A DNA stretch of 63,560 nt, the filler included, from Octopus bimaculoides (Eukaryota): the NCBI RefSeq assembly GCF_001194135.2. It is 7 parts of 6 records of this genome, joined end to end, with 100 filler letters (N's around TTAATTAATTAA, not from the genome) between each part and the next. Parts side by side here need not be neighbours in the genome. Positions count along the whole stretch, not along the records: positions 15,114 to 35,370 come from NC_069004.1; 6 more parts are not named here. One strand, 5' to 3'. Under the pieces are notes generated by a model. The model worked only from the letters and a program-made list of their open reading frames with translations, ran no database searches and had not been told where the DNA came from. Position 1 is the stretch's first letter. Each line of letters begins with the position of its first letter. Position numbers and translations under genes: made by a program. Positions 10,410 to 34,918 of this stretch are shown piece by piece.

Positions 10410-12877
10410 TCACACACATGTATACACACACATGTATAAAATAATGTGTTTTGAATAGCACAACAATGCACTATAATAACAACAATGAACTATAGTACCT
10501 GTTATAATTTAAACATCCACATTCTGATATAATATTTCGGAATATAAAAATTCCTTCAGATATCACTAGGAATTGATCGAGTCACTGCTATATATATATA
10601 TATATATATATATATACGTTTATGTGTAATACATGCTGACAATTATGTGCACGCATACCCAGTAAGTTATGTATGTATGTATGTGTATATACGTAAGAAA
10701 AGAAATAGTGTGTGTATATCTTCTTTGCATACAGTTGCACTGATGAATATGTGACGTGTTCATGTCAAAAATATGTTTAGCTGTGATAGGAATAACCTAT
10801 TGGAGGTAAATATATTTTCTTCTATCACTTAATTGTATTACAGTAATTGGTAGCTTCTTTTCGTTATAGTTCCATCCAGGTAGAATCTGGTTATGCTCTC
10901 AGCCATGCCACATGCGCTTTCGTTGTGTGGTTAATGCATAACAAATCAGGGCTTCGATGCAGTCTCCCTATTATGAATCTATTTGCGTGGTGTAGATACA
11001 ACAGGTAGTTTATTATAAAGTAGAGTATAGGTAAACCTTTTCTTACATTTGTGGCTATCTTCTCAATGAAGATATTTACGAAAGAAGGTTCGTGTTTTTC
11101 AGATATCTAAGTTACAATAGAATTTGTTTCCCCACTTTGCACTAAGTGTGTGTGTATGTATGTGTTTTTTTTTAAATCTTCTTTATTCGTTTCAATCATT
11201 AGATTGAGGCCGTGTAACTGCACCGCCTTCAAGAATTTTAGTAGGATGAATCGACCGCGGAGAAACGAAATAAAGTTGTTCTCAACAGATTTGGTGGGAG
11301 ATAGAATTATTTTCTAATAGGTTTGACTGAGTTTCATACGACGTAAATCTTCTTGGATGCGTAGGAAGAACCCACCTCATCATCTTGAACTTGTCTCAAA
11401 TCCGTTATTCTGCTTCTGATACCTAATGAGAGGGGTTCGTCTTAAGCGCCCACGGAAATTTAAGCCTTATGAATTTCTGTGTCAAACTGGTATTAAAATA
11501 TATATATTTACGTTTTTATATATGTGCATATGTATATATGTTTGAAGTTGTGCATGTCTATACATATAAACGTACGTAAATAGGTGGTACAATCGCTAAG
11601 AAAAACAAAATTCACTACAATTGTGCTGTACACTTTACTCTGGGAGCAAGAAGTGTGAACGCCCGTCAGTTTCGCCCCGGGTGTGAAACATCAAACTGTG
11701 AAATTTAGAGAAAGAAAAACGGAAGCGAAAAATGGCGAGTTTACACAGCAGTAAATACAGTGTGTGATTTATTGGTTTTCTTTATAATAATTGGGCGTGT
11801 GTACGTAAGTGTGTGTGTGTACGTGTACTGGTTACAAATACATCAACTTGGTTGGATTTATAAAAGCACACTGCATTCTGTATAGTGTGTGTGTGTGTGT
11901 GTTTACGCGCGCATACATATATACAGATATATGTATGCTCATCGTTTTACAAATGAGAAGCAAAATACACGCCATGGAAACGGTATTTATGTATTTATGG
12001 TGGCGCTGATATTTCTCGCTGTTGCAACTCAGAGTGTCGCCAATATTCTCGTTATTCTTGTACCTGATGATAAATTGCAATCTACAGTATTTATATTCAA
12101 ATATGATGGCCAGGATTCATGTGATATCCGCCTATCTACATATGTGTGTGTGTGTGTGTGTGTGTGCATATGCTGATACACATTAACACATATTCACATA
12201 CATATGGAAGCACACGCACAAACATATATACATACACGCAAGAACAGATGCATAAATGCGTTCGTACATTTTTAAACACATACATACTGGCACAGATATT
12301 TGCACACACACACATACATGCTCACTCACGCATAACGTTTGTGTTTGGCCTTAAAATGTATTGAATTGTTATATCATATTTACAGTTATCCCTATTCGTC
12401 TCACATATTTCTCTTAGTTCTGTATGACATACATTCTATTTCCTATTTCTTCCATTGACCACACATATTTTAAGCAAATCAGTCTTTGCTTCGTCCATCA
12501 TATTGTGTTAGAAATAGCTGTAGTTTGTAGTTCAATCATCAGCCACGTGATCAGCGTGTATGGACGTGAATGTCGGAGTCGTAACAGAGAGTAATATCAG
12601 CGCTTTAATGTAATCCAAAGCGTTTTTCCCAGAGAATCGAAACGCATGAACTAAGGGCAAACTACATAGATATCCGAGCAAACTGCATTCAAATACATAA
12701 TAATAACAATAATAATAATAAAGATATCGGATTGAAAGATAGTGAAATTGGGACTTCATTGCCGAACTGCAGAAAAATGCATTTCTGTATTCTACAAGAA
12801 TCCTAAGAAAGATTCTTGAGATTTACAGAAACCAAAACTTCAAGACAACATTATTGCTAATATAGCCTGTAATAGGG

Positions 12878-15114: not shown

Positions 15115-15648
15115 TCAATTTTGGTGTATTGGTGCAACTCTGAATTTTGATTACGATCAACAAATTATATTATCTCATAAATTAAAAAATCTGGGAAAAT
15201 TTGGGTAATCAAAGGAGTCCATAGATAAAAAAAAAAAAAGATTGAGAAACGCTGTTCTAAATCATCTAAAATATTAAACTTCTCTTGGTCATTTTGTGGC
15301 GTAGCTTACTTGAAAGATAAGTAATATGACTTCTTCCATTCATCGTATTTCTCCTGGATCTAATGGAGAAAGAGCACCTTGTCTCTAGTGCTTATCCTCA
15401 TTTGAACATAATTGGGATTCAGGTAAATACACTGTGATTGATTCACTGAGTCTATTGGGTAATATTTTTGTGAAGATCTTCCTGACTATAGAAGGTAAAG
15501 AATAACAGTGGTGTAAGAAGTGTATCAGGTCTGTACGAGGATTATAACAAGATTATAACAATTGTAAAGGAGAGAGTAATATGATGAAAGTAATACAAAC
15601 AAAAGCAGTTACCATCTTTTCTTAATTTTCCTTTTCTTTCTGTTTTAG

Positions 15649-15691
15649 ATACCTCGGCACCAACCACATGTGAAACCATCTCCTGTGACCT
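15649..15691 (+). CDS. TNF-like gene A exon 2 (stalk, 43 nt)
   Basis: tttctgttttag|ata...gtgacct|gtaagt; encodes IPRHQPHVKPSPVT+t. Flanking introns are homologous to those of gene B exon 2. Confidence 0.8.
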
Positions 15692-18600
15692 GTAAGTATA
15701 TATATTTTGTTACCATTTTCCTATCCATGTGTCTATAATATCATCTTCAGCTGTAACATATTGTTACATTAATGAAATCACTAAACATGTTCTCAGTAAC
15801 AGACCTTCCTCAAAGTTCAACCCATGACCTCAATGTGGTGGGAAGGTTAAACGAGTGAGTGTCAGAGCTATGCCATCGGGGACTCTGAGTCCCTGTTAGG
15901 GCCACCCAAGGTGGACAGGTTTGACACCAGCGGTGCTAGGGCCGCAACCCGGCTAACTGAAGGGCAATGGTGAATTCCAGGCAACATCTGTTCCGGAATC
16001 CAGCAGCTTTCTGGTGGTGTTGGACTGCATCTGTAGGCATCCTGCAGCAAGAAGGCTTAACACAAGAACAACCTGCCAATGGTTATGTACGGTGGCTTAT
16101 GAATACAGGCAGCAACTGTTTCCATGGGCTCTGATCATCCCTTGAAACTCCTATGAACTCATCACTGGAACCAGGAATGGCTTCAACACACTGCAGTATT
16201 GGCCATCAACAGAAAGTAAGAGACATACTAAAGAAATAGATGGCAAAAATACCCATATTATTAAATATATAAAAGAAATGTCTACGATAATTAACTGGAC
16301 CATGGCTTTAGATGACACTTTGACAGGAGGAAACTCCCTGTGTACATTTTGTATTATCAGTCTCAGCAAGGCATTGCTACCGTACAACTGACCATATTAA
16401 AGCCTATGAAACTATATGATGGGTGTAATATATAGATATTTATATAGTCTTGGTTTTCTTCATTAATGGTTAATACTTGTTCTCCATGATGATTGTGAAA
16501 CAGTTAATGTTGTACAGTTATTTATTAGATGATAATCTGAAGTATAAAATATATGAGATGCATCAGGTAGTGACATTTTCTGGTCTTAGTCTTCTGTTTG
16601 ATAATGAACCGGATCTATTTTAAAACGGGGGCCACAGTTTTCATTAATGTTTTACGTAGTGTTTTTGGTACGGAAAGACTTTCAAACTTCGTATACTTAT
16701 CTATTTTGTGTTATAGAACAGAAAAATATTTTTGTATTCGAATTTATTTCATGTAAAAAATTGTCTTATTTTGATTATTTCAACCAATCACTGACAAGTA
16801 TTCAGTTGTTTATATTTACTCCTTTGGCTGATTAAGCGGTGTAAAGCGTATTTAATCTCCATAACTTCTTTTTTCATTTTAAATTTGCTTTTTTCATTTT
16901 CTTTTTTTTTTCTTCGTTTTATTTGCTTTTTTCTTTTTAAATTTGCTGTTTTACCCTAACCCTAACCCTAACCCTAGGGTTAGGGTTAGGGTTAAGGTTA
17001 GCCTATAATAGAAATGTTTATTAGCTACTGCCAATATGCTTCAGCCATTTTTTGACAAGGAAATAATAATTTTATCACCGATAGAATTGTTTCAGAATCG
17101 TTTGTTTATGTAGTCGGCACTTAATGTATATCGGTTGAATGGACGTCAGTGATTGGTTGAAATTACAGAAATACGACAACTTTAACATGGAATAACTTAG
17201 GGATTTCTTTTTTTTTTTTTTAAGAAGACTAAGATAAAAAGATGTTTTATATGACACATTCTACCAGTGTTCCAAGTTTCAAAGTGTTTCGTTAAGAAAA
17301 TACTGTGGCCCCCGTTTTAAAATAGATCCAATGAACCTGTATTCAAATACATCTTATTTACTCTGTTTTCTCACTTCCTTCAGTTCACCATGCCTTCTTT
17401 CACTTGAAAACAGAAGGTTACAAAAAGTTGGGTAAGTTAATTTATACAGATTTATAGCAAACTTTTTCTCATTATTCAAATTATGCTCATTAAATTACTA
17501 CAATTACATCATCATCATCATCATCATCGTTTAACGTCCGCCTTCCATGCTAGCATGGGTTGGACGATTTGACTGAGGACTGGTGAAACCGGATGGCAAC
17601 ACCAGGCTCCAATCTAATTTGGCAGAGTTTCTACAGCTGGATGCCCTTCCCAACGCCAACCACTCAGAGAGTGTAGTGGGTGCTTTTACGTGTCACCCGC
17701 ACGAAAACGGCCACAAAATACTTTCATTAAAGACATGTGTTAATGACTATTATTATGTACTTGAATTAACTCCTGCTATTATAGAATTTGAGAAAACTAT
17801 TATACTTGGGTGAAGTATATCACCAATATAGACTTAAGTGTTATGACAAGCATGAGTTAACTACTATATTGAAAGATATGGACCAACTATAATTATAATT
17901 AGAAACGTCAAATACAACATGTAGAGATATGTGGACCAACTACTACTACCACCACCACCACTATGACAACCTCTACATATGTCTGATAATACTACAGGTG
18001 GGAGGCGTTTACTGCTTGGGTTGTGGTTTAATTATTACAGACCAACCTCCAAAACATAAATAAAACACTAACGAACAAAATCAACATCAACAAACAAGAG
18101 AAATAAATATATTCAGTATTTTGACATTGATAAGATCACATCAACAAGGGTTAAATAGAGACAGTCTGTATAAGAATAGGAATGTCCTTAGACTTCATTT
18201 AATTGTATTCAGAAGTTTTAAAGATTATACAGAGCATATCTGAATGATTACTTTTAACTACATTGTTAGCTGGACAATTATATATATATATATATATATA
18301 TATATNNNNNNNNNNNNNNNNNNNNNNNNNNNNNNNNNNNNNNNNNNNNNNNNNNNNNNNNNNNNNNNNNNNNNNNNNNNNNNNNNNNNNNNNNNNNNNN
18401 NNNNNNNNNNNNNNNNNNNNNNNNNNNNNNNNNNNNNNNNNNNNNNNNNNNNNNNNNNNNNNNNNNNNNNNNNNNNNNNNNNNNNNNNNNNNNNNNNNNN
18501 NNNNNNNNNNNNNNNNNNNNNNNNNNNNNNNNNNNNNNNNNNNNNNNNNNNNNNNNNNNNNNNNNNNNNNNNNNNNNNNNNNNNNNNNNNNNNNNNNNNN

Positions 18601-20195
18601 NNNNNNNNNNNNNNNNNNNNNNNNNNNNNNNNNNNNNNNNNNNNNNNNNNNNNNNNNNNNNNNNNNNNNNNNNNNNNNNNNNNNNNNNNNNNNNNNNNNN
18701 NNNNNNNNNNNNNNNNNNNNNNNNNNNNNNNNNNNNNNNNNNNNNNNNNNNNNNNNNNNNNNNNNNNNNNNNNNNNNNNNNNNNNNNNNNNNNNNNNNNN
18801 NNNNNNNNNNNNNNNNNNNNNNNNNNNNNNNNNNNNNNNNNNNNNNNNNNNNNNNNNNNNNNNNNNNNNNNNNNNNNNNNNNNNNNNNNNNNNNNNNNNN
18901 NNNNNNNNNNNNNNNNNNNNNNNNNNNNNNNNNNNNNNNNNNNNNNNNNNNNNNNNNNNNNNNNNNNNNNNNNNNNNNNNNNNNNNNNNNNNNNNNNNNN
19001 NNNNNNNNNNNNNNNNNNNNNNNNNNNNNNNNNNNNNNNNNNNNNNNNNNNNNNNNNNNNNNNNNNNNNNNNNNNNNNNNNNNNNNNNNNNNNNNNNNNN
19101 NNNNNNNNNNNNNNNNNNNNNNNNNNNNNNNNNNNNNNNNNNNNNNNNNNNNNNNNNNNNNNNNNNNNNNNNNTGTGTGTGTGTGTGTATATATAAATTA
19201 AGGTGGCTCTCTTTTACTTGTTTCAGTCATTTGACTGCGGCCATGCTGGAGCACTGCCTTTAGTCGAGTAAATCGACCCCAGGACTTATTCTTTGTAAGC
19301 CTAGTACTTATTCTATCAGTCTCTTTTGCCGAACCGCTAAGTTACGTGGATGTAAACAGACCAGCATCGGTTGTCAAGCGATGTTGGTGGGGACAAACAC
19401 AGACATACAAACATATACGTGTCTTCTGCTATAGCCCTGAGCCAACCGAAGCTTTGTGATTGAATTTGGTAGGCGGAAGTTACTGCCGTGTGTGTATACG
19501 TCTGTGTATGTGCTTGTGCCTCTCTCCCAAAGAGAGAGAGAGGGGGATATATCCATATATATGACAGGCTTCTTTCAGTTTCCGTCTACCAAATCCACTC
19601 ACAAGGCTTTGGTTGGCCTGAGCTTATAGTAGAAGTCACTTGCCCAAGGTGCCACGCAGTGGGACTGAACCCAGAACCATGTGGTTGGTAAGCAATCTAC
19701 TTACCACACAGCCACTCCTGCACCTATATATTAATGCTAGGTCTAATAACCAGCTGATGTAGATTTGTGTGAGGAAACACTGTAATGCATTGTCTATGAG
19801 TAAATAAATCATTTCTATATAACTTTATACTTGGTTCATTATAATATGCTCAGTGATGTGTTACATAATTTTCCTCTTGAATAGAAACAGCACAAGCATG
19901 TTGTGACATGTACAGACAGCCATGTACAACATAGTAAATGGCTGGCTGCAGTTAAGTTTCGTATTAACAATAAATGTTTGACAGATTAGAAGCTCTTTGC
20001 ATTTATTTGTAACTTTGAGCATCTAATCAGGATTGGCAGTTTTAATAAAGAAGTTGGTAGTAACCTCATGATACTAGCAAGTAGCTAGAAAGGCCTCCAA
20101 GTGTTTTCACAGGGTTCTAATGTTTATTAGCTCTAAAATATTTCTCAGTGTGTATGCAGAATGTAGACTAGATGAGACATGAATTAAATGGACAT

Positions 20196-20230
<35 letters not shown>

Positions 20231-21693
20231 CCTATGTGTGTGTTTGTTTCCTAAAGAGCTGGCTTGATCTTCATCCCTACCATACAGTATGAGATGGTTG
20301 ATCCTTTAAACTCATATCTCGAAGTTACTTTCCTCAAAAGCAACATTAAAGGAATCCATTCTGCGTAAAACAAATAGCAAAGAAGGCGTTGTTTCCTTGA
20401 AAGTTCCCTCTCTTCATTCTTAATCTTCCTAGATCCTGTCTGTTTTATGGGAGTTCTGTCTTCCAGTTCTCCATGCCTTTTTTTCAAACAATCCTTGACA
20501 TCCTTTGCAATTCCAAACCTGTTCAACCATTCAATGTTCCTCAAACATGGTATCATGTCAGAGGCCTTACAAAAATATGTCCAGACCATTGCTAAACTTG
20601 TCTTCCTTTGCTTACTGTCTTTCATTACCTTTTTCCTATTTTATTGGAGAACTTAAGACCAGCTACTCACAGATAAAATGGTGATTATTATTATTATCAT
20701 CATTATTATTATTGCTATTATTATTATTATTGAGTGAGAGCAGTGCATGCTATCAACTTGACACTGAGATACGAATATACAAGGCCTAGTATACCTGTCT
20801 GATAAGGGTACACCAGGCACATGCATCACAACCATATGTGTATGAGATGATGATCTTATATCAAGATAAACAGTACATGACCTTGCAGGTGAGGCCCAGT
20901 TGGAATTTTCTTCTGGATCAGTAGCCCATCGCACTCAAAAGGTCACAGATTAAGGTTTGTTTAAGGATGATAAACAAAACACCCATGTATCCAGAGGTGA
21001 TTTATTCAAACCCCAAAGAATTCCTCTCAACACATCTGTGATACTCTCCCACAAATTCTACTCACGATCAGAGATGCACATATCATCAGTCACTAAAGGA
21101 CATGTTCGTCTGGTTAATGACAAGCAGCTGACATGCAAATCAGTGTTATTGAGCAGAATATTTGCTGTGGCCCATCTTTTATACCACGACTAAATAATGT
21201 ACATGTTAATACTTCCAATCAGTTAATTATCATTTATCAGTTATTATTATCATCTTCATCATCATCACCACCACCATTATTATTATTATTATTTCTTTTT
21301 TCAGATGACGTGATTAATTTACAGTGGCTGAAAGATGACAGCCAAAATGTTGGTAACATTAAATTGATTGATGGATGTTACTTCTCTATACCCCAAGATG
21401 GTCTTTACCAAATAAACTTTGTGATCCAGTTGCATATTCCGAAAGATGCTAATGCATCAATTGTAACCTTGGTGTTACAGAGAAAGAATAATGAAAAAGA
21501 TTATGTATTCATGAAGAAAAGTTCAAGTTCCTTAACCATATCAGAACATGACACGATACAGTCATCATTTAGATACAAATTTAAAGCTGATGAGATAGTC
21601 TTTTTAAAGATGAACATGGCAAAATTTATCAGCTGCAATAAGAACTCCAGCTATTTGTATATCAGCAGATTGAACATAAACAATAATCATTAA
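15649..21693 (+). CDS. TNF superfamily ligand-like gene A (exons 2-4; exon 1 not resolved)
   Basis: Exons 15649-15691, 17384-17431 and 21305-21693 have canonical AG/GT sites and join in frame (phases 0/1/1): IPRHQPHVKPSPVT-FHHAFFHLKTEGYKKL-DDVINLQWLKDDSQNVGNIKLIDGCYFSIPQDGLYQINFVIQL...YISRLNINNNH*. It carries TNF-domain hallmarks (A-strand xxHL, conserved LQW, IPxDGLYxI). Exon structure matches paralog B. Confidence 0.85.
16611..17329. mobile_element. Palindromic MITE with 28-bp TIRs and 8-bp TSD (Merlin-like by GG ends), telomere-like core, in gene A intron 2
   Basis: TIR ggatctattttaaaacgggggccacagt at both ends; TSD aatgaacc on both sides. Internal inverted repeats (ttcaaccaatcactgac). 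Central (taaccc)n-(tagggt)n palindrome at about 16955-17000. Empty site in gene B intron 2. Confidence 0.85.
17384..17431 (+). CDS. TNF-like gene A exon 3 (48 nt, first THD strand)
   Basis: cacttccttcag|ttcacc...aagttgg|gtaagt; phase 1-1; encodes FHHAFFHLKTEGYKKL. 39/48 nt identical to gene B exon 3. Confidence 0.88.
17507..17714 (-). mobile_element. 5'-truncated 3' end of the same RTE LINE, inserted in gene A intron 3
   Basis: Matches 46745-46930; absent from the homologous position in gene B intron 3. Confidence 0.85.
19200..19725 (-). mobile_element. SINE family B, full-length copy in gene A intron 3
   Basis: Match to 25060-25465. Confidence 0.85.
20260..20650 (-). mobile_element. R4/Dong-type LINE RT fragment
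   Basis: KQRKTSLAMVWTYFCKASDMIP...LNRFGIAKDVKDCLKK (degenerate AWIDYRKAYDMVPH). Confidence 0.65.
21305..21693 (+). CDS. TNF-like gene A exon 4 (TNF homology domain, terminal exon)
   Basis: atttctttttcag|atgac acceptor; open to TAA 21693 (within ORF 21133-21693). Motifs LQW, G-I-K-L-x-x-G, IPQDGLYQI. Confidence 0.9.
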
Positions 21694-21727
21694 AATGTTG
21701 TGCTTCTTCTGTGGGCATTTTCATTTG

Positions 21728-21945
21728 ATTATATCTTATTTCTTTATTGCCCACAAGGAGCTAAATATAGAGGGGACAAACAAGGACAAAGGGATTAAGT
21801 CGATTACATCGACCCCAGTTTATTGACCCCGAAAGGAGGAAAGGCAAAGTTGACCTTGGCGGAATTTGAACTCAGAACATATTGGGAAACAAAATACCGC
21901 TAAGCATTTCGCCCGGCGTGCTAACGTTTCTGCCAGCTTGCAGCC
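21728..21945 (-). mobile_element. SINE family A copy immediately after the gene A stop codon (3' UTR)
   Basis: Match to family A, about 35 nt after the TAA. Confidence 0.8.
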
Positions 21946-22439
21946 TTTTATAATCATTTGATTATGTCTGTTTCTTTGTATTTTGTCTAGCTCAAAATGC
22001 AAAAAAGACATTGATGTAAATAGTCATGTATATTGTTTGTACGCACCAATCCTCACACATGGGCAAATACGTATTTTTCTATATAACATGCTATTGAATC
22101 ATTGTAAATAAACAATCATTGTAAATAAACTAATTCTAAAACTAATATATTCCATGTTTTCTATTTTTACGATTTCCTATTCGGTCTTCTACTCTTCCTA
22201 TTATTATTTTATTTTTTCCTTTCTTTGTTTTGCACCATTGCTTAAACTTTGGAATTTTTGTATTTTTAATGGACCAAGCAATGCACTTAGTAATTCTGAA
22301 AAGAAAGCAACATGGAAGTGATACATGAAAAGTTATTAAATGTGAAAGTGTATGGGAGAAAGAGTCTTCCCAACTACCCTAGTTGAAAGCAGTATAATAA
22401 AGTAATTCAAGATGTGAATGCTGGAAAATATCACTGAGA

Positions 22440-22730
22440 TTTTTTAAATTTCTGTTGGGAAAGGATATAGCCTGGTCATCCAAATAGTTAATCAGGTTGT
22501 ACAGGAAGTTGTCATAACTTATGACTGATATTGCAGCATTATAGTTGACTATTACAATGATAAAAGAGATGCTTTAGAGAGAGGTAATTACAGATGTATC
22601 AGACTGCTGGACCAAGTCCTGAAAGTTACAGAAAGAACTATTACTCAATTAATTAGGAAGCAAATTAGTCTTGATGAGATGTAGTTTGGTTTCATGCCAT
22701 GGAGAACTATTACTGATACGATTTTGTAAC
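22440..22730 (+). mobile_element. RTE LINE reverse transcriptase fragment
   Basis: DALERGNYRCIRLLDQVLKVTER...ISLDEM*FGFMP. Confidence 0.75.
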
Positions 22731-23239
22731 GATGAATGTAAAAATAAAATAAGGAATGGCAAACATGTTATAAGTTATTTTATTTTATTTATTTATTTTT
22801 TTTTTTTCACTCATTATTCAAAATTTCAAAGTGGGCTGTGGAGCCTGAAAATGTAAATTTAAGAACTTCAGATTTTAACAGTTGTTTTTAAAGGATTTCA
22901 CAATAAAAAGATATATTCTTGAAAATTTTTTGCTCCACCCTAATGTGCAGCTTAAGTGTGTGAGAACAAGGTACAAATATGTTGAAAGAAAAACTGGACC
23001 TAAGAGTGATCAAATTTAGAGTAAAAAACAGCTATTAAGGAAGAATTATAAAGCTCATAAAGGAAGAATTAAACATACATAGATACAGTTTTTAATAGAC
23101 AACACGTCTTTTTTTTAAATTTGATAAATCAAAACACAAAGTTGTTGGAGTAAATGCATATTAGCATGCAAGAATTAAGCTTGGTTATAACAAAATATGA
23201 ATACAAAATCTCTACTTACTGTGGTCATTCATTCTGATC

Positions 23240-23680
23240 CTCTTATTACTGCATGAACTTCCTCATTTTTGACGATTTCTTGTGCACAGCTTCTGGAAAA
23301 TCTCTCATCAAGCGCCAGCGGCAGTCTACCATCATGTTTGAATCTTATTGGCCTTGAGAGTGTTCTTCCATTACTTTCACATCTCAATGAAAGTGTTTAC
23401 CTTGTTCTTTGCTAACATCACGCAATTTCTTTCGAAACTCACCCAAGTGATTGAGTAAGTAGTGTAATTTAATGCCCATTCTACATCCAGGTGTTTGTAA
23501 ACTCAAGATCAGTTCTTTCACAATCTCCCACGGAAATTCCACACCACATCAGAGAAGACATTCCAAGCGCTAGCCTCAACTACACTCATTGTTGTAACAA
23601 AATGTGGACCCCTGAAGAGTATTCTTATTCGAGGTTCATCAAATATTCCTGCCTTCTTGTCATTGAAATCTGGAGAGCTT
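23240..23680 (-). mobile_element. DNA transposon transposase relic (Chapaev/CMC-like)
   Basis: KAGIFDEPRIR...EASAWNVF...GCRMGIKLHYLLNHL...VSKEQGKHFH*DVKVMEE...NMMVDCRW. The superfamily assignment is from memory of the motif. Confidence 0.65.
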
Positions 23681-23724
23681 GTACATATATACATACAGTC
23701 TCTACTGTGATCAAGTTTTATGTG

Positions 23725-24076
23725 CAGTGTCTCTATTTGTTGTATTTGATCCACATGTATAATTTCAATTATAGTTGGCCCAAGTCTTTCAATATACTAA
23801 TTAATGCTTACTTGTCATAAGAGGTATATAATGGTAATATACTTCAACCAAATGGAATAGTTTCCCCTCATTCTACAACAGCAGGACTAAACCCAAGTAC
23901 ATAACAGTAGCCTTTATCATATGTCTATAATGAAAGTATTTTAATACTGTAATAGTAAGAATTAGCTTAAATCTGTAATTTCAGTTATTTAATGGGCATA
24001 ATTCAAATTATGAGAAAAAGGTGTGCAATAAATCTGAATAGATTAGCTTACCCAACTCTTCGTAACCCTTTGTTTT
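23725..24076 (-). pseudogene. Partial duplicate of gene B (3' part of exon 3, its donor and about 320 bp of intron 3)
   Basis: Near-identical to about 29275-29623 (tgtctctatttgttgtatttgatcc...cttacccaactcttcgtaaccctttgtttt). It diverges mid-exon, and no exon 4 was found downstream. Confidence 0.8.
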
Positions 24077-25059
24077 CCCTATGAACCAGAGGGTTATTAA
24101 CGATATTCTTGTCACCTGGCTTCAAATGGTTTCTTGAGAACCATTCTTTTTTTTACCTAGTGATCTTTTGCAGCACTACTGTTCTAATAGTACAGGAAAC
24201 AAGGGTATTTAGTGTAACTTCTTTGCTGGTCCAGTAGGAGGTTTATAATTTTCAAATTAATACAAATTACCTTTTTCCTACAAATAGTGGTATGAAGTTA
24301 AATATTGGCATGCTCCAGGTAGATACCAATGTGATGTGTTGTGATAGAGCAAATCAGATGCCAGTTTTGGAATCAGCAGTCAAAAATTAGTCTGAAGCAG
24401 GTCTAAGATTTTATACCAGAGAAAAAAAAGTTTTATTTTGTTGACTAGTATTATTAACATTACATGATATTTACACTTAAATGTCTCATGTTATAATATT
24501 CACACAGACAGAGGGAACACAGTCGGATTAATTCATTAAATTGTCCCATTGTTCATGTTATAGACACAAAACCCATCCCATTTTTCAGTCTTATGTATTT
24601 GAAAAGCAAGCACAAACAAACAATGATCAATGGTCCTTACTGGACCATAGGCTCACAAGGCCAATTTGTTTGGATTCTGTGGTGAAGAGGTGCTGGTTCA
24701 TTGCAGGATTACTTACTTCTGCCAGCTGAGTGGACTGGAGCCACGTAAAATGAAGAATTTTGCTTATAAACACAGTTCTTGAACAAAACACTTGCCCAGT
24801 TTTTTCTCACAGCACATTTATACAATGTTGCTCATACACACTTACGTTGCATATCCAATGGAGCATGCTCCATTTCTTTCCAGTCTACTAAGGTCCTCTA
24901 CATTCAAGACCCCTATCATGCAATATTGCAGTCCTAACACAAGTGTTATACAACCTACCATTCAGTCTATCAGAAAATATCTTTGTTGTCAGCAGTCATA
25001 GTACAGTTGAGAATCCCTTCTCCAGAATTCTTGGGACCGAAAGTGTTGTTGATACTCTC

Positions 25060-25465
25060 TTTTTACTCTTTTACTTGTTTCAGTCATTTGACTGTGGCTA
25101 TGCTGGAGCACCGCCTTTTAATTGAGCAAATCGATCCCAGGACTTATTCTTTGTAAGCCTAGTACTTATTCTATCGGTCTCTTTTGTCGAACCACTAAGT
25201 TACGGGGACGTAAACACACCAGCATCGGTTGTCAAGCGATGTTGTGGGGACAAACACAGACACACAAACATATACACACACACACATATATATAAACACA
25301 TATATACGACAGGCTTCTTTCAGTTTCTGTCTACCAAATCCACTCACAAGGCTTTGGTCGGCCCGAGGCTATTGTAGAAGACACTTGCCTGAGGTGCCAC
25401 GCAGTGGGACTGAACCCGGAACCATGTGGTTTGGAAGCAAACTACTTACCACACAGCCACTCCTG
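25060..25465 (-). mobile_element. SINE family B (tRNA-derived, internal (TA/CA)n)
   Basis: ggagtggctgtgtggtaagtag...gggttcagtcccactgcgtggcac...actgaaacaagtaaaagag. Other copies at about 1755-2095(-), 19200-19725(-), 26160-26330(-), 32300-32580(+), 35785-35960(+), 44735-44823(-), 57930-58040(+), 60280-60480(-) and 60930-61070(-). Confidence 0.85.
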
Positions 25466-26301
25466 TTTTTTTTTAATTTTTTTTATTTCAGAGTATTTTT
25501 TAATTTGTGTTTATAAAATAGGACAGCATGAAGATAAGACCAAAATCTAAATACAATATCCATATTTACATTTCATAATATAACTTATACATACACCCTG
25601 AAATGTAGTTTTATGTACATTTTTAATCATTTTTTTTTAAATACACAATACCACCAGAAATATATGATATCAGTCTCCAAGTATGATGTCAAATTTTGAT
25701 TAAAAGGTTATTGTCACATGTACCCCATTTGTATTATATTTTGTAACATACAATAGGTTTTTAAGATATAAAAACAAACCATTCAACTTAATTACAGGTA
25801 AATCATTTCTGCTATAGGTACAAAGCCTGAAATTTTGAGTAGGAGAGCTAATCAATAACATCAACTTCAGTACTTGACTGGTACTTATTTCATTGACCCC
25901 AAAGGGATGAAGGTTAAAGTAGACCTTGATGGAATTTGAACTCAGAATATAAGATGGATAAAATGCTGCTAAGAAATTTTTTAAGCATACTAAAATAAAT
26001 AAAACGAAAACAGAAAAAAAAGGTAAGTATTTTATTTTTAAAGTTATGTACATGTAATGATGTTAAGCATTTTTACAGCATTTAAGTAAAATGAAAACTG
26101 AAAACAATAAGCATTTTATATTTAATTATGTACGTGTAATTATGCTAATCATGTTACATTTAGTCGAGCAAATCGACCCCAGGACTTATTCTTTGTAAGC
26201 CTAGTACTTATTCTATCGGTCTCTTTTGCCGAACCGCTTTGTTACAGGGACGTAAACACACCACCATCGGTTGTCAAGCGATGTTGGGGGGACAAACACA
26301 G

Positions 26302-26337
<36 letters not shown>

Positions 26338-26338
<1 letters not shown>

Positions 26339-26900
26339 CTAGCAGTATAGCCCGGCGCTGCTCGGGATTAAGCTAGGATTATTAAATGATTAAGTGCTTT
26401 ATTTCAAACCAAAATAAGTAACATCTACATCATATTTGAGCGAAATCCGTTGAAGTTGGTTTGGTTGAAAATGGTTTGCTGGCAATTTGATTGGGAAATC
26501 CCATAAGGAATCAGTTTATTGGTTATTTTCAGTCATTGACTCTTTTTTTTAAATGCTGAATTAGAGATCTGCATAGGAGAAGGTTGATCTGAAGATTTGC
26601 ATTGGGGATCTGGATTGGAGTAACTTAGGAAAGCTTACCAACAACCTTAACCAAAAAATAAGGGGCCTCTCCCTTCTAGGTTAACTAACCCTAACCCTAA
26701 CTGACCCTAAAACCGTAACCCTAACCGTAACATCCTAGTGGAAATCGTGCGGGTGTTAATCTGAAAAATTATCAAACCCTTTTTGTGGTCCGAAAAACGG
26801 GTTGGGGGTGGGGTGACTGACAATTGTTACATACGTTTTTGTTTCATAGTTGTGAATGTAAACAAAACTCTTTCGCTCCCAAAGTATATGTGCGTATGTG
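26338..26900 (+). mobile_element. Possible Helitron/HINE-like element with (taaccc)-like repeats
   Basis: Starts actagcagtatagcccggcgctgctcggg (subterminal hairpin); aaccctaaccct tract at about 26690-26730. Confidence 0.4.
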
Positions 26901-27433
26901 TGAGAGTGAGAGGGGGGAGAAAGATGAAAGATTTAAAATAAAAAATTTTTGAATTGTTGTGTGAGAAAGTATATATAATCTTATAGAATAGAGTGTCTTT
27001 CAAAAACATCTTATATTTGAAACTATATCTCATGTTTAAGAAAACAAATGCATTTTACTCTGTCTTCCTTAGCTACATTTTCTTTCCTAATACGCTTTGT
27101 CTCCCTCTTCCACTTGTTCGTTCCTTTTTCTTTTTTTTTTTTTTGTTAGACGCTGTCTTGGTGAGAGAAATTTTTTTTTCCTTCGCCGCTTTGTCTCCCT
27201 CTTCCACTTTTTTTTTTTTAGACGCTTCGCAAGCAGTTTCTCCCTGTCACAAACACACTATTTCTTTCTTTCTCTCTCTCTCTTTCTTTCTTTGCTGGTT
27301 CTTGTGACCCGACACTTGGATTGGCTGCTGCCAATTGCATCTTGGAATAAGACCAACCTTTATTTGAGACCTACAACCACAAGCTATTTTGGCATGGGTG
27401 CTTACCAGTTGTAAAAATATATTGAGGATTATT

Positions 27434-27804
27434 TTAGTGTATGTTGGTGATAGAACAGCGGCTTGAGGACTTATCAGGACTGATGAATTTCACTTTGTTC
27501 ATCCTGAAATAGATCTTGTCATTAACTTCAAGATATTTTGTGGATATCAATTGTATCCTGGTATGTTCTGAGAAAGTTAAGGAATTTAAAGTTTCCTTTA
27601 TGTATTCATATTGTGTTCCATTCTTTCCCTCCAATGTCAAGAACATATGAAATGTAATAGTATTTTTTGGAATGTTGAGTTGAATTGTACATTCTATAAG
27701 GTAAATACCATCTTCAGGAATATAAATGAAAGTTCCACCAAGCAATTTAATATCCCCTTTACTCTGGTTCATAACTTTTATCCATTGTAAATTAGTTAGA
27801 CTCT
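27434..27804 (-). CDS. TNF-like gene B exon 4 (TNF homology domain)
   Basis: tttttccag|agagt acceptor; lies within ORF 27434-27817. About 38% aa identity to gene A exon 4 by hand alignment. Confidence 0.9.
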
Positions 27805-30800
27805 CTGGAAAAAACAAAAAAAAAACCAGACATAAAGTGTTGGAGTGTACACAGAATGAAATTATAGAAAAATGTAAAAGGTATATATGGTATACAAAAA
27901 AAAAAGGAAGAAGTATTCATAGTACACATCAGTAAAAAAAAAAAAAAAGTGTTTTTTCTGATACAGGAGGACCTCTAGGGTGGGGCAGTAGGGGCAGTTA
28001 TGTCTGTTGTAGGCAATCTGTACTCTCCTCCTCTTTTGGGTATCACTTGCCATGTTCCAACTCATTCCTCCTACTCCAAATCAATCCACATTAACTTTTA
28101 TTGATGCAATCGTTGGACTGGACTGCCTATATTCAGTCCACTGCAGGATGAAGACTTCAGCATATCCTCTCCACCAACCATGTTCTGATGTGGAGGCTGT
28201 GAATTTGAGCTTGAGACCATACTGGTTTGTTGATCCTGCCACACTGGCTCAACATGGCTTGGCAAAAGGGTGCTTTTTTTTTTCTTTTATACTTTTACCT
28301 AGGAGTAGATAAGTCAGTGGAGGCGCAATGGCCCAGTGGTTAGGGCAGTGGACTCGCGGTCACAGGATCGCAGTTTCGTTGTGAGTGTTTATCGAGCGAA
28401 AACACCTAAAGCTCCACGAGGCTCCGGTAGGGGGATGGTGGCGAACCCTGCTTTACACTTTCACCACAACTTTCTCTCACTCTTACTTCCTGTTTCTGTT
28501 GTACCTGTAATTCAAAGGGGCCAGCCTTGTCACACTGTGTCACGCTGAATATCCCCAAGAACTACGTTAAGGGTACACGTGTCTGTGGAGTGCTCAGCCA
28601 CTTGCACGTTAATTTCACGAGCAGGCTATTCCGTTGATCAGATCAACTGGAACCCTCGACGTCGTAAGCGACGGAGTGCCAACACAGATAAGTCAACTGC
28701 ATCAACTCCAATGCTTAACTGATACTTATTTTATTGACTCCGAAAAAGATGAAAGACGAAGTTGACCTTAGCAGAATTTGAAACCAGAAAATAGGGACAG
28801 ATGAAATATCCCTAAGCACTTCACCTGGTGTGCTAAAGCTTCTGCCAGCTAGTTGTCTTATTGATGTGATCTTATTGATGTTAAAATACTGAATATATTT
28901 ATTCTTGTTCACTGATGCGGAATTTGTTTTTTTTTTTGTTTTTTACACCTTCTCAATTTATGACCCATGTGACAAAGATCGTCCACACTTACGACCACAA
29001 AAAAAAAAAGAAAGAAAGAAAAAAAAAGAAAATAAATAAATAAAAATCGACTTTCAGACGTTGGGCAGGTACACGTACAATAACTGTGGCAGCATCTGGC
29101 AACGGAGGCCTCCCTCAGATCCCGGCATCCACTGTCTGCTACTGTCTCTCACTCAGTCGGTTTCAAGCATCAGTTGTGTGTGAATGGGAAAAGTGTTGTT
29201 GTTGATGGTGGTGGTGGTGCTGGCGGTAGTAGAAGCAGTAGCAACAGCAGTAGCTGTAGCAGCAGTTTGGCACATGTCTCTATTTGTTGTATTTGATCCA
29301 AATGTATAATTTCAATTATAGTTGACCCAAGTCTTTCAATATACTAATTAATGCTTACTTGTCATAATAGGTATATAATGGTAATATACTTCAACCAAAT
29401 GGAATAGTTTCCCCTCATTCTACAACAGCAGGACTAAACCCAAGTACATAACAGTAGCCTTTAGCATACGTCTATAATGAAAGTATTTTAATACTGTAAT
29501 AGTAAGAATTAGCTTAAATCTGTAATTTCAGTTATTTAATGGGCATAATTCAAATTATGAGAAAAAGGTGTGCAATAAATCTGAATAAATTAACTTACCC
29601 AACTCTTCGTAACCCTTTGTTTTTAGGTGTAACAAGGAATGGTGAACTGAAAGATTGGAAGAGAGAAAGCAGACAGTGAGAAGGATATATTTTGATATAG
29701 GTTCAATATCAACAGAAGACTATTCAAAGAAAAGAGCACCTCCTGATGTATTTCATATATTTAATATTTCAGATTATCATCTAATAAATAACTAAACAAC
29801 ATGTTAACAGTTTCATAATCATCATTATCATAAATAAAAATTATCTTCATGGAGAACAATAATTAACCATTTATTAACCATTAATGAAAGGGAGCCAAGA
29901 CTATATAAACATCTATATATTACACTCATCACAGTAGTTACATGAGCTTTAACATTGTCAGATGTACGGTAGCAATGCCTTGCTGAGACTGATAGTACAA
30001 TTCTAGTAAACGTGTACAGGAAGCTTCATCCTATCAAAGTGTCATCTAAAGCAGGGGTTTTCAAATTGTGGTCCGCGGACCACAGGGGGTCCGCAAGGAC
30101 AAGACAGGGGGTCTGTAGACAGCAAATACTTTTTATGGGCAATTTGATTTTATATATGTTTTTTAATCGAAATCTTTTAATTGACAATAAACCTATTTGT
30201 TAAATACTGTTAAATAAATAAATGTAAAAATATGTTATTTTAAGCAAATATTTATGTGTAAATTTAATAAGCGTTTATAAGGGGGTAGTAAAGCCTGAAA
30301 TATAAAGGGGTCCGCAAGTCAAAAAGTTTGAAAACCCCTGATCTAAAGCCATGCCCAATTAATTATTGTAAACATTTCATGATGTGGGTATTTTTTTCCA
30401 TTTATTTCTTTATGCCTGTAACTTTTCAAGTTGAAAGAATTGTTGCCTATTAAAATATTAAAATAGACTAATATATTGAGGACATGTTTAAAGATTTCAT
30501 TACTGTTACAATATATTAATGTCAGATGATTTTATAGACATATGAAATGAGAAACGATTACAATATATGTACTTACAGGGTGGAGAAGTTGGTGTCGTGG
30601 GCAGTGGTGAAGTTGTTGCCACAGGCTGTAGAGGAGGTGGAGGAGGACATTTCTTCTAAAGTAAAAAAATAAAGAGAGAAGAAGAGGCAAACTAAGATAA
30701 GAGGGTGACTGGTGCTATTTGTATTATTTCCATCATATTACTTTCTCTTTTAAGGTTTGTCATTGTCTGGTTACAATCCTGATACACTTGTTATATACTT

Positions 30801-32471
30801 TTACTATTGGAGGCGCAATGGCTCGGTGGTTAGGGCAGCGGACTCGCGGTTTCGATTCCCAGACCGGGCGTTGTGAGTGTTTATTGAGCGAAAACACCTA
30901 AAGTTCCACGAGGCTCCGGCAGGGGATGGTGGCGAACCCTGCTGTACTCTTCCACCACAACTTTCTCGCACTCTTACTTCCTGTTTCTGTTGTGCCTGTA
31001 ATTCAAAGGGTCGGCCTTGTCACCCTCTGTGTCTCGCTGAGTATCCCCGAGAACTACGTTAAGGGTACATGTGTCTGTGGAGTGCTCAGCCACTTGCACG
31101 TTAATTTCACGAGCAGGCTGTTTCCGTTGATCGGATCAACTGGAACCCTCGACGTCGTAAGCGACGGAGTGCCAACCACAAGAACAATACTTTTACTACT
31201 TTTGTCTTATACTTGATACACTCTTCTCACATTCACGTTAGTATTGGTCTCTTGTTACATATTATCTCTGTCATGTTACTGTGCTACACACACAAATATG
31301 TACACACACACACATATGAGAAGTAAAAGGAATCAACAAACGCAGGCAGATAATATTTTTCATTATAAATGATCTTGACAGTCTTTTTAAATATTCTTTT
31401 CACTCTACTGTTATTTTATTGCCATTTATTTCCGAGCATTATAAATTTTACAGGTAAAATATTTTTCTGGGAATAAATTACGATTAATAACACTGCTGCT
31501 ATGGGAAATTATTGCTCAGCTTTACAAGTTTTCACTTAACAAGCGGTCTCTGGAAACAAATTAATTCATATATCGAAATGTTACTGTATATACACACACA
31601 CACACACACAAATATATATACAGTGTGTTCACAAAGTCTGGGTACATGGAGTAAATAAAATCGTAACATAAACAAATATAAGAAATAATAATTTCTTAAA
31701 GTATGTGTTAATCCCCATGTGGGTACATGGAGTAAATAAAATCGTAACAGAAACAATTAAATATAAGAAATAATAATTTCTTAAAGTATGTGTTAATCCC
31801 ATGTGGGTACATGGAGTAAATAAAATCATAACATANNNNNNNNNNACAGAAACAATTAAATATAAGAAATAATAATTTCTTAAAGTATGTGTTAATCCCA
31901 TGTGGGTACATGGAGTAAATAAAATCATAACATAAACAATTAAATATAAGAAATTATAATTTCTTAAAGTATGTGTTAATCCCTATGTACCCAGATTTTG
32001 TGGACACCCTGTATAAAGCACTCAATGTTAAATGTACCTGGTTGACTATATGAAACAATTAGGTAGCAAAAAATGCAAGTAGAATTAGCATTCAAGGTAA
32101 TTTGTCATGTATGACAGGTAAATCCAAATAACACTACGAGAATTTCAAGAAATTCAGAGTAAAAGACAGCAAGAATAAGAATGGAGACAATCACATCTTT
32201 AACTGGTGATTACACCATACTTTACTGATAATTGTTTCTTTTGTGCCAACATATTTAGATACAGAAAAAATGAATAAAATTTCCACTCAAATTAATATAT
32301 CTGAAAATAGTGGCTGTGTGGTAAGTAGCTTGCTTACCAAACACATGGTTCTGGGTTCAGTCCCACTGCGTGACACCTTGGCCAAGTGTCTTCTACTATA
32401 GCCTCGGGCCAACCAAAACCTTGTGAGTGGATTTGGTAGACGGAAACTGAAAGAAGCCCGTCGTACATATG

Positions 32472-32508
<37 letters not shown>

Positions 32509-33597
32509 ATGTTTGTCCCCCCAACATCGCTTGACAACCGATGCTGGTGTGTTTACGTCCCTGTAACTTAGAGGGTTGACAAGACAACACATGCTCATGG
32601 AAACTAATGAACATTTATTTACATTATGTCTACCCAAAACGAAAGATTGCCAAAACAGCGATTTTTCGTTTCGATTTGCATGTCTGTCAATTTACTATGA
32701 TCGCTTTAACATAAGCAAAATCAAAATTTTAAATTGGGGAGGGGGCGGATTTGAAAAGGTGGAAAGTGCATTTTTCAAGGAGATGTGCAATTCTTCAAGA
32801 AGAGGTGCAATTACATTGACCTCCTAATATGAAACAAAACCCATTTTCTTTTTATCCAGAAAACGGGGTGGGGTGGAACCATTGGAAATTTCACCCCCTA
32901 CTCCCCCCCTTTTTTTAAAAAACAAAAATACGCGGAAAGAATACATTTCCGACAGCTTACGAGGTCTTCTAAAACGATTGCACCCCCCCCCCCAAAAAAA
33001 AACGCGAAAAGAAAATTATTTAGCACCGAACTTTAGTCTGGTATGAAACTATAAATTTACCGAAAGTTGTCTCATTTCTAAAAATAGAATGAGGGGAGAA
33101 CCGTCAAAACGGGGGAAACCCGAAATGACGACGTTGCTGCTANNNNNNNNNNNNNNNNNNNNNNNNNNNNNNNNNNNNNNNNNNNNNNNNNNNNNNNNAT
33201 AAATTTACCGAAAGTTGTCTCATTTCTAAAAATAGAATGAGGGGAGAACCGTCAAAACGGGGGAAACCCGAAATGACGACGTTGCTGCTAATGGTTTTAT
33301 GTGTGGGATAGTAAAAAATTTGGACAAATTTAAATGTACGACAATTATTCAAAAGCCTGCTGAAAGTAAATAAAGTTCGAGTTTTACCTGGGTTAGGCAG
33401 ATACAAACAAAAACAAGTATAATCAAACAACAAAGGCTTCCGTATTTATAATAATTTGAGTCGAGAATTTTCTGACATCTAGATTTAACTGATTTGTCTG
33501 GAGTAAAATTTCCAATTTCGTCCACATTTTGGAATGAGTTTTGTTGTTTATTGTTCGCATCTTGGTCCAAAAGAGTTAGTGATAAAGCAGGAGGCAT
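27434..33597 (-). CDS. TNF superfamily ligand-like gene B, complete 4-exon type II membrane protein (235 aa)
   Basis: Exons 33597-33388 (210 nt), 30655-30577 (79), 29646-29599 (48) and 27804-27434 (371) total 708 nt in one frame, all GT-AG. Protein: MPPALSLTLLDQD...YYKYGSLCCLIILVFVCICLTQ (TM) KKCPPPPPLQPVATTSPLPTTPTSPP (stalk) FHHSLLHLKTKGYEELESLTNLQW...IPEDGIYLI...SITNIH*. Confidence 0.9.
28319..28686 (+). mobile_element. SINE family C in gene B intron 3
   Basis: ggaggcgcaatggcccagtggttagggcag...gacggagtgccaac; flanked by an agataagtca duplication. Confidence 0.85.
29599..29646 (-). CDS. TNF-like gene B exon 3 (48 nt)
   Basis: ccaatctttcag|ttcacc...gagttgg|gtaagt; encodes FHHSLLHLKTKGYEEL. 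Confidence 0.9.
30052..30340. mobile_element. hAT-type MITE in gene B intron 2
   Basis: 14-bp perfect TIR caggggttttcaaa; perfect 8-bp TSD atctaaag. The paralogous empty site (single ctttagat) is at 16306-16313. Confidence 0.9.
30577..30655 (-). CDS. TNF-like gene B exon 2 (Pro/Thr-rich stalk)
   Basis: tttactttag|aagaaa...ccaccct|gtaagt; encodes KKCPPPPPLQPVATTSPLPTTPTSPP+t. Confidence 0.87.
30808..31185 (+). mobile_element. SINE family C in gene B intron 1
   Basis: Same family; flanked by a tacttttacta duplication. Partial copies at 36400-36603(-) and 37370-37545(-). Confidence 0.85.
31621..32011. mobile_element. Tc1/mariner-type MITE with internal tandem array (about 4 x 82 bp), in gene B intron 1
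   Basis: TA-flanked. TIRs cagtgtgttcacaaagtctgggtac / cagggtgtccacaaaatctgggtac (22/25). Units start gggtacatgg at 31640, 31721, 31805 and 31904. Confidence 0.8.
33388..33597 (-). CDS. TNF-like gene B exon 1 (cytoplasmic tail plus transmembrane signal-anchor)
   Basis: aaaaATGcct start; ends ...CICLTQ cag|gtaaaa in phase 0; hydrophobic segment GSLCCLIILVFVCICL. Lies within ORF 33349-33615. Confidence 0.85.
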
Positions 33598-33659
33598 TTT
33601 TGGAAGTTTTCGCACACTAGACGCAACACGGTGTTAGCAGCAGCGATTAAAACTAGTCT

Positions 33660-33694
33660 GAATGAATGAATGACTTCGTCAGTGAATTTAAATA
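33660..33694 (-). promoter_or_regulatory. TATA-like box plus Initiator core promoter of gene B
   Basis: Minus strand TATTTAAA (33694-33687) followed by TCATTC (33665-33660). The Inr A at 33663 is 31 nt from the first T of the TATA box and 66 nt upstream of the ATG. Confidence 0.6.
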
Positions 33695-34002
33695 CCGCTA
33701 CGTTTTGACGTTTCTCTTAGCTCCTCCTCTTCTTTGTCGTACTATACAAAAAAACGTGGTAGCAACACATCCACTTCCTTCCTGTTCTCTCACTCTCTCG
33801 TGCCTTTTCTCTCACCTTCTTATTTTCTCGTTCTCTCGTTCTTTATCTCGTTTTCTTCTCTCCCTCTCTCTCCTCCTCCCTCTCCCTCTCTCTCCTCCTC
33901 CCTCTCCCTCTCTCTCTTCCTTCGTATCAAATTTAAGGCCGTTTTACTATTTGCATTGACAACATAGTAAATTATGCGCCCACGTAATTTTAGTGCATTA
34001 CA

Positions 34003-34918
34003 TCAGGTTATCCCATAAGTTCTGTCCAATTTTACCTTTTTTAAAATTGAATGAAATTTAATAGTATTTTAGAATGTCTAATGGAATTAAAAATTATTTT
34101 TATGCATTTGTGTACATTTAAACTAATTAAATATTATTTTACAGAATAATAGAATTAAAATTTCTTTGATTAAAACCCTTTCTAACATGAAAGTATCCAT
34201 AGAGCATTTGAGGAACAAAATGTTTTATGAGTAGAAAAAGGAAACTCTGCAGCCGAAGCTACTCCAAACATACACCCAGTTTATGGGAAAGAATGCTTGA
34301 ATGAAAGAACTTGCAGAAGATGGTTTGCAAAATTCAGAAGTGGAGATTTCAGCCTTGAAAATGAAGATCAAACAGGACGTCCAGTTGAGTTTGATGATAA
34401 GCTCCTTGAGGCATTACTTGAAGAAAATCCTGCATTATCAGTTGAAGAATTGCCAATAAAGCTTAGTTCAAACCATACAACTGTTTATCGTCATCTTCAA
34501 CAACTTGGAAAGGTTCCTAAACTTGGAAAATGGGTGCCTCATCCTGAGTTGACATCTGCTCTTCTCTCCATTCTCGCGAAATCATTTCACCCTTTTTGGA
34601 TAGACTTGTGACTGGTGACGAAAAATGGATCTTCTATCGAAATGTTAAACGTCGTAAACAGTGGCTCTGTAAAAGGGGAAAAGCTCAACCACAACCGAGA
34701 AGGGAACTTCATAGGAAAAATGTTCTTCTCTCTATTTGGTGGGATTGCAAGGGAATAATTCGCTTTGAATTGTTACCACCTAATGTAACAATCAATGCTC
34801 AAGTTTACTCTCAGCAATTAGAGCGTTTGAACCAAGCTTTGAAGGAAAAAAGACCCGCTTTAGTGACTCGAAAAGGAGTGATGTTTCATCAGGACAATGC
34901 GCGACCCCACACTGCATC
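34003..34918 (+). mobile_element. Mariner transposon, decayed and 3'-truncated
   Basis: TIR-like end after TA (catcaggttatcccataag). ORFs with RRWFAKFRSGDFSL, GKWVPH, VTGDEKW, LLSIWWD and HQDNARPHTA; stop codon, frameshift and deletion present. Confidence 0.9.

Follow-up and report, generated by a model that had tools for sequence, protein, structure and literature searches.

The question raised by this locus is why two duplicated genes should resemble each other more closely in their introns than in the exon that encodes the main domain of their products. The window analysed here is a stretch of 63,560 nucleotides from the genome of Octopus bimaculoides (GCF_001194135.2), in which two convergent genes of four exons each, gene A on the + strand and gene B on the - strand, lie on chromosome CM046624.1. 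Positions 17434-18305 and 19174-35370 match this chromosome in assembly GCA_001194135.2 at 100% identity. The two genes belong to an octopod-specific, locally clustered family of ligands resembling the tumour necrosis factor (TNF) superfamily, and the O. bimaculoides cluster runs in the order E, D, B and then A in opposite orientation, over a span of about 30 kb. The excess of intron over exon similarity probably stems from a fast exon and not from any preservation of the introns. The comparison included the Octopus vulgaris orthologs of A and B (locus L002) and of E (L003), together with two further paralogs, P0023 (L004, on another O. vulgaris chromosome) and P0010 (L005, from Octopus sinensis). 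Family members were recovered by exhaustive profile search, as a word-indexed homolog search with B exon 4 alone returned no matches. Positions are those of the window unless a locus is named.

The homology between A and B is collinear and inverted, both in a BLAST of the region against itself and in a BLAST of A against B. It joins positions 15513-15798 of A to 30804-30474 of B (65% identity with gaps), 16213-16313 to 30425-30341 (72%), 16305-16610 to 30052-29700 (75%, E 1e-63), 17332-17508 to 29705-29521 (80%), 17715-17949 to 29489-29256 (76%, E 2e-44), and 18057-18148 to 28945-28857 (78%), while the region of exon 4 (A 21286-21699, B 27824-27416) aligns at 65%. The earlier note on this DNA, made by eye, had pointed to blocks of roughly 80-90% identity within 16340-16460, and the segments 16349-16414/29935-30000 and 16417-16460/29888-29931 are both 89% identical; its second example, 17715-17960, is the BLAST alignment that ends at 17949. 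A 60-column window sliding over the alignment, from which the transposons had been excised, gave identities of 0.72-0.78 at the end of intron 1, 0.18-0.40 in exon 2 because of a large indel, mostly 0.75-0.90 in intron 2, 0.85 in exon 3 and 0.75-0.90 in the first ~340 nt of intron 3. Within intron 2, identity falls to 0.5-0.7 in a poorly aligned stretch that follows the first insertion site, and again near the site of a miniature inverted-repeat transposable element (MITE), and the breaks in the intron homology are due to later insertions. Hence, the alignment of the end of intron 1 and of the first ~340 nt of intron 3 stands as the earlier note described it, but that of nearly all of intron 2 holds only once these insertions are removed. 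Counted without gaps, the introns of A and B are 0.81-0.83 identical and exon 4 is 0.63. In exon 4, protein identity is 39% (51/132) and DNA identity 63.4% (122 codons aligned), in agreement with the values of about 38% and two-thirds estimated by eye, and the DNA differences are spread evenly across the codon positions (0.35/0.37/0.38).

The same contrast is found in other members of the family. Introns and exon 4 are 0.88 and 0.67 identical between B and E, and 0.89 and 0.78 between E and D. Between A and E, the 300 nt of intron abutting exon 4 are 83% identical (0.877 ungapped), against 72-74% in exon 4. Likewise, the intron blocks recur in E, D, P0023 and P0010, where they are 67-84% identical to those of B. 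For exon 4 of these genes, identity is 38-54% to A or B in protein and 67-69% to B in DNA. The pattern is therefore a property of the family and not a peculiarity of the A/B pair. A high-copy dispersed repeat as the source of the intron homology is ruled out by copy counts in the six loci sampled (L001-L006, ~207 kb of octopus sequence): the four intron blocks gave 37 hits, all of them at the collinear place in family genes or in a copied fragment (copy C, described below), while the short interspersed nuclear elements (SINEs) of the same introns gave 20-54 hits.

Calibrated against O. vulgaris, the intron blocks drift at the background noncoding rate and are not specially preserved. The blocks conserved between paralogs are 0.887-0.933 identical between the orthologs of the two species (ungapped; 7-11% different). 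All collinear noncoding segments, which include shared transposon relics and intergenic DNA, range over 0.78-0.96, all but one of them being at least 0.87, and the pooled noncoding difference between orthologs is 0.083 over 5,438 sites. Exon 4 is the least conserved segment of the ortholog alignment. Its difference of 0.130 in A (p = 0.0024) and 0.148 in B (p = 7e-5) exceeds the noncoding 0.083, and that of E (0.106) is not significantly different from it. At replacement sites alone, the orthologs differ by 0.099 in A, 0.125 in B and 0.062 in E, against the same 0.083.

The ratio of replacement to silent change (omega) and the synonymous divergence (dS) were estimated by pairwise Goldman-Yang maximum likelihood (ML). 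Omega in exon 4 is 0.58 between the A orthologs, 0.64 between the B orthologs, 1.38 between A and B of O. bimaculoides and 0.79 between A and B of O. vulgaris. The reading of the earlier note would have failed had the dS of exon 4 been about equal to the intron divergence with omega well below 1, or had the intron homology been a high-copy repeat. None of the values of A and B (0.58-1.38) is distinguishable from 1, and the dS between A and B (0.52-0.70) is 2.5-3.3 times the intron divergence (Jukes-Cantor distance 0.21). An omega near 1 in a domain that has kept its fold suggests a mixture of constrained and positively selected sites, and we infer that the replacement rate of exon 4 is adaptive rather than merely relaxed.

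The proposed course of events may be put as follows. The separation of A and B would be about twice as old as that of O. bimaculoides from O. vulgaris, and recent enough for introns changing at the ordinary noncoding rate to be still about 80% alike. Meanwhile, the coding exons 2 and above all 4 would have gathered changes at or above the noncoding rate. In exon 4, an amino-acid replacement would have had about the same chance of fixation as a silent change, and the exon would therefore have overtaken the introns in divergence. The speed of the exon may reflect very weak constraint, diversifying selection on the ligand surface, or both. The time scale comes from the paralog distance divided by the ortholog distance, a ratio which cancels rate differences among classes of sequence. 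For A and B this ratio is 2.2 (1.85-2.69) in the noncoding blocks, 3.0 (2.1-4.4) at third positions of exon 4 and ~2.6 for ML dS. A single duplication date, about twice the age of the species split, fits both the introns and the silent sites, with the extra divergence at all sites of exon 4 being replacement change.

Several points weigh against a fast exon as the source of the contrast. Exon 4 of E is under clear constraint, with an omega of 0.24 between orthologs that is significantly below 1 (2dlnL 14). An omega above 1 was shown by no formal test (pairwise ML; A, B and E), and the rate tests rest on two species and ~125 codons. A partition of omega between strands and loops gave unstable estimates in which the codons of the beta-strands vary at least as much as those of the loops, so the concentration of change in loops expected from a simple receptor-surface model is not borne out. 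As silent sites diverge 2.5-3 times faster than alignable noncoding DNA even between orthologs, the choice of the neutral yardstick matters: exon 4 looks weakly constrained when measured against dS, and faster than neutral when measured against the introns. Two ratio comparisons, given below with the mosaic history, count on the same side. Of the three options raised in the earlier note, a fast TNF-domain exon is nevertheless the best supported and is probably correct as far as fast evolution goes (0.130 and 0.148 against 0.083), while positive selection was not demonstrated.

The opposite explanation, also among those of the earlier note, places the intron blocks under purifying selection as regulatory or splicing elements, which could for example help to define the micro-exons of 43-79 nt and 48 nt. 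In its favour, conservation is highest on either side of the 48-nt exon 3, all paralogs share the first ~50 nt of intron 3 at 83-89%, and the alignable noncoding divergence is only about one-third of dS. But between orthologs the blocks are no better kept than the remaining intron and intergenic DNA or the shared transposon relics (mostly 0.87-0.96), and MITE and SINE insertions have been tolerated within them. The alignment of nine genes over intron 2, exon 3 and the start of intron 3 contains no invariant run of 8 nt or longer, and the intron blocks had no match in Rfam, by which an intron-hosted RNA was also rejected. Conserved intronic elements are thus not supported, and such selection is highly improbable as the cause of the pattern. 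A different possibility is that some process directed at the exons raises the input of substitutions at silent and replacement sites alike, either as local mutation or as patchy ectopic conversion among exon 4 copies. It draws on the silent sites of exon 4, whose difference between orthologs of A, B and E (pS 0.24-0.29; ML dS 0.23-0.30) exceeds the noncoding value (0.083-0.096; p < 1e-4 against 0.083 in each of the three genes). Four-fold sites differ at 13/80 (0.16) between orthologs, and in each ortholog pair eight or nine codons have changed at more than one nucleotide. Exon and intron resemble each other in GC and CpG content, so base composition does not explain the excess. Against this stands exon 1 of E, with 9 synonymous changes in 67 codons and 14/67 third positions different, and so the excess is not specific to exon 4. 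Moreover, it may be a general difference between coding and noncoding DNA or an effect of alignment (noncoding identity with gaps is ~0.88), in a comparison limited to genes of this family. The proposal resembles those made for the exons of conotoxins and snake toxins, in whose genes targeted mutation or ectopic conversion has long been suspected and, to our knowledge, never demonstrated. It is improbable that the coding exons of the octopus genes receive in this way an excess of about three times the change of the abutting introns; if they did, the family would be a repertoire that generates ligand diversity in an invertebrate.

The remaining explanation is a mosaic history, in which conversion or unequal crossing-over in the cluster before the speciation made A and B uniform from exon 2 through the 5' part of intron 3, while exon 4 descends from an older ancestor. 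The large excess of dS over intron divergence may seem to call for it, but the excess is equally large between orthologs and therefore gives no pointer to homogenised introns. Unrooted neighbour-joining trees with bootstrap were built for intron 2 and exon 4. In intron 2, A of O. bimaculoides groups with A of O. vulgaris, and B with B, at 99-100%, and in exon 4 the ortholog pairs group at 100%. The strict grouping of the introns by orthology means that no conversion between A and B has occurred since the speciation. Likewise, the A-B intron identity within a species equals that between species (0.81-0.83), and the signature of concerted evolution, paralogs within a species closer than orthologs, is absent for A and B. 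As an older event, the mosaic history can call on the ratio for all sites of exon 4, which at 3.2 (2.5-4.1) against the noncoding 2.2 is compatible with an early burst or with an older exon 4. For B and E, the noncoding and exon 4 ratios of 1.6 (1.36-1.88) and 3.3 (2.6-4.2) have intervals that lie apart, so there has been some mosaic history in the cluster. In a 3' block of intron 2 (L001 3220-3611 in E and 11572-11898 in D), D and E of O. bimaculoides group together at 84% bootstrap, while the exon 4 tree pairs E with its O. vulgaris ortholog at 100%, which hints at conversion between adjacent paralogs after the speciation. Incongruence of the two trees as a whole was examined and rejected: the unrooted topologies agree for A, B and D+E, and only the local D/E signal differs. 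Two further observations favour a mosaic history, namely that the 3' part of intron 3 of A (20684-20986) is homologous to E and not to B, which is without that part, and that copy C (98% identical, 349 bp) attests to recent local copying. On the other side, the ratios for third positions and for ML dS agree with that of the introns, the same intron blocks are kept in a paralog on another chromosome, and the intron of A and E adjoining exon 4 is far better kept than the exon itself, so the contrast follows the exon boundary and not a conversion tract. Conversion of the region from exon 2 to intron 3, as the earlier note had suggested, is therefore not needed for A and B, and a mosaic origin of their contrast seems rather unlikely. 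The cluster is like tandem arrays under concerted evolution in being a clustered family with similar noncoding stretches, a D/E hint and a copied fragment, and is unlike them in the firm grouping of the A and B orthologs.

The pattern resembles the accelerated protein-coding evolution of snake-toxin families. Near-neutral or faster turnover of extracellular domains is a usual signature of venom, immune-recognition and reproductive proteins. For example, the introns of three-finger toxin genes are >85% identical while segments of their exons diverge (PMC2474615), and accelerated evolution is described for the crotaline phospholipase A2 isozymes by Nakashima et al. (1993, 1995), as these are cited in PMC6062510. 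The octopus genes are like these families in being recently duplicated, clustered genes for secreted or surface proteins, in which the introns of paralogs stay similar, the target-binding exons of the mature protein diverge and the fold is kept. In the octopus family, the introns are more similar than the exon of the mature domain in every pair given above (A/B, B/E, E/D and A/E). Noncoding divergence lies well below the synonymous divergence both between A and B and between orthologs, at about one-third of it; in the phospholipase A2 papers of Nakashima and colleagues it is reportedly about one-quarter. The octopus genes are unlike the venom families in encoding TNF-like ligands and not known toxins, in an omega of ~0.6-1.4 that is not clearly above 1, with E under clear purifying selection, and in an intron identity (~80%) lower than that of the three-finger toxin genes. 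The immune and chemotactile ligands of cephalopods are poorly known. An octopod-restricted cluster of TNF-like ligands, whose extracellular domain turns over about as fast as neutral DNA or faster, is a candidate for a rapidly diversifying repertoire of signalling or defence in these animals. The locus also indicates that 'conserved introns' in young paralogs should be interpreted as regulatory conservation or gene conversion only after calibration against orthologs.

The assignment to the TNF ligands rests on structure more than on sequence profiles. Ligands of the TNF superfamily are type II membrane proteins with a stalk and a C-terminal jelly roll of ten strands, and they have undergone lineage-specific expansions in molluscs. 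The AlphaFold2 model of the A product has a hydrophobic transmembrane helix at residues 38-64 and a C-terminal domain of ten or more strands with a pLDDT of 80-93. In Foldseek against the PDB, this model matched TNF-alpha, RANKL, FasL, TL1A and APRIL (E 2e-9 to 5e-8, probability 1.00, TM 0.67-0.83 on the target), and it thus has the TNF-homology jelly-roll fold by which the superfamily is recognised. B exon 1 encodes LCCLIILVFVCICL and is followed by the proline-rich exon 2. The products of A and B are thus predicted to be anchored in the membrane in type II orientation, with exon 2 supplying a proline-rich stalk and exons 3 and 4 a TNF-homology jelly roll, and in topology, stalk and fold they are like the known ligands. 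In sequence they are unlike the solved TNF ligands, with an identity of only 12-16%. Against Pfam, B exon 4 scored 16.2 bits (E 0.01) where the gathering cut-off of PF00229 is 23, and A exon 4 gave no TNF match, while PF00229 is listed as 'weak' on paralog E in its source record. UniRef names the products 'TNF family profile domain-containing protein' or 'THD domain-containing protein', and other sources 'uncharacterized'. All relatives found come from octopods (O. bimaculoides, O. sinensis, O. vulgaris and Argonauta hians). The family has at least four members within the ~30 kb here and ten or more clusters at 50% identity overall. A search of the literature found no paper describing an octopus TNF-like family or its expansion.

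The four-exon scheme proposed in the earlier note is confirmed by the splice sites, the reading frames and the annotation. All introns of A and B are GT-AG, the frames join across the exons, and the models correspond to the annotated proteins P0002 (A, 223 aa) and P0003 (B, 234 aa). In gene A (+ strand), exon 1 lies outside the sequence piece. The 3' end of intron 1 (15513-15648) is homologous to B 30804-30656, and exon 2 (15649-15691), with an AG acceptor and a GTAAGT donor, encodes the proline-rich stalk in 14 codons and 1 nt (P0002 residues IPRHQPHVKPSPVT). Intron 2 (15692-17383) is homologous to that of B outside the insertions 15799-16212 and 16611-17329, and exon 3 (17384-17431; 48 nt, FHHAFFHLKTEGYKKL) supplies the first beta-strand of the TNF-homology domain, placed at residues 81-86 in the AlphaFold2 model. 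Intron 3 (17432-21304) is homologous to B at 17432-17508, 17715-17949 and 18057-18148, and holds a SINE (17509-17714) and an assembly gap (18306-19173). Exon 4 (21305-21693) encodes the TNF-homology domain and includes the stop codon, its open reading frame being that of P0002.

In gene B (- strand), exon 1 (33388-33597) contains the start codon and encodes the cytoplasmic tail and the transmembrane helix at the N-terminus of P0003, ending in the donor CAG/GTAAAA. Exon 2 (30577-30655), for the proline-rich stalk, has a tandem NAGNAG acceptor (ttAG AAG/AAA, 30652-30657) with an alternative start at 30652, which accounts for the annotated isoforms of 235 and 234 aa. Intron 2 (29647-30576) carries a MITE (30340-30052) with the target-site duplication ctttagat, and is followed by the 48-nt exon 3 (29599-29646). 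Intron 3 (27805-29598) is homologous to A in its first 343 nt (29598-29256) and at 28945-28857, and contains SINE-type repeats at 28850-28689 and 28683-28318. Exon 4 (27434-27804) covers the TNF-homology domain and the stop codon. The possibility of hidden alternative exons in intron 2 was rejected, since every annotated model, whether of O. bimaculoides or of O. sinensis/O. vulgaris, is built of these four exons. One further assembly model, P0001 (315 aa; L001 10001-26261), runs from paralog D (exons 1-3 and part of exon 4) into gene B (exons 2-4), and is probably an annotation chimera or a read-through transcript. In intron 1 of B, two 92-nt stretches (33051-33142 and 33199-33290) that are 100% identical lie on either side of a gap of 56 N (33143-33198), and are most likely an assembly artefact. 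The same intron has a tandem repeat at 31639-31988, with a unit of ~82-84 bp and copies 86-92% alike, which adjoins a gap of 10 N.

The insertions in the introns are recognised as real transposon insertions by their empty sites and target-site duplications. The MITE in intron 2 of A (16611-17329, +) has terminal inverted repeats of 31 nt and an 8-bp target-site duplication, aatgaacc. B has an empty site in its place, the O. vulgaris ortholog carries the element, and 26 related copies occur in the sampled loci. At the centre of the MITE (16943-17014), telomere-type hexamers form what looks like a perfect palindrome, with (CCCTAA)n running into (TTAGGG)n. The MITE of B has a duplication that is also of 8 bp, and its site in A is empty. 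The first insertion of A (15799-16212) is a later element in intron 2.

Copy C (23728-24076, -) lies between genes A and B and is 98% identical to B 29275-29623. It comprises the final 25 nt of exon 3 and 324 nt of intron 3 with the GTAAG donor intact, and it has no counterpart in the O. vulgaris intergenic region, so it is a recent, lineage-specific copy. In the O. vulgaris ortholog of B, a 116-nt piece similar to the 5' part of intron 3 (L002 39812-39697; 82% to B 29539-29428) stands upstream of the intron 2 homology, and is another sign of local copying of this segment. At 34297-34985 (+), the window contains a frame-broken relic of a mariner/Mos1-type transposase, with matches to Pfam Transposase_1 (E 8e-28) and a tail of HTH_48.

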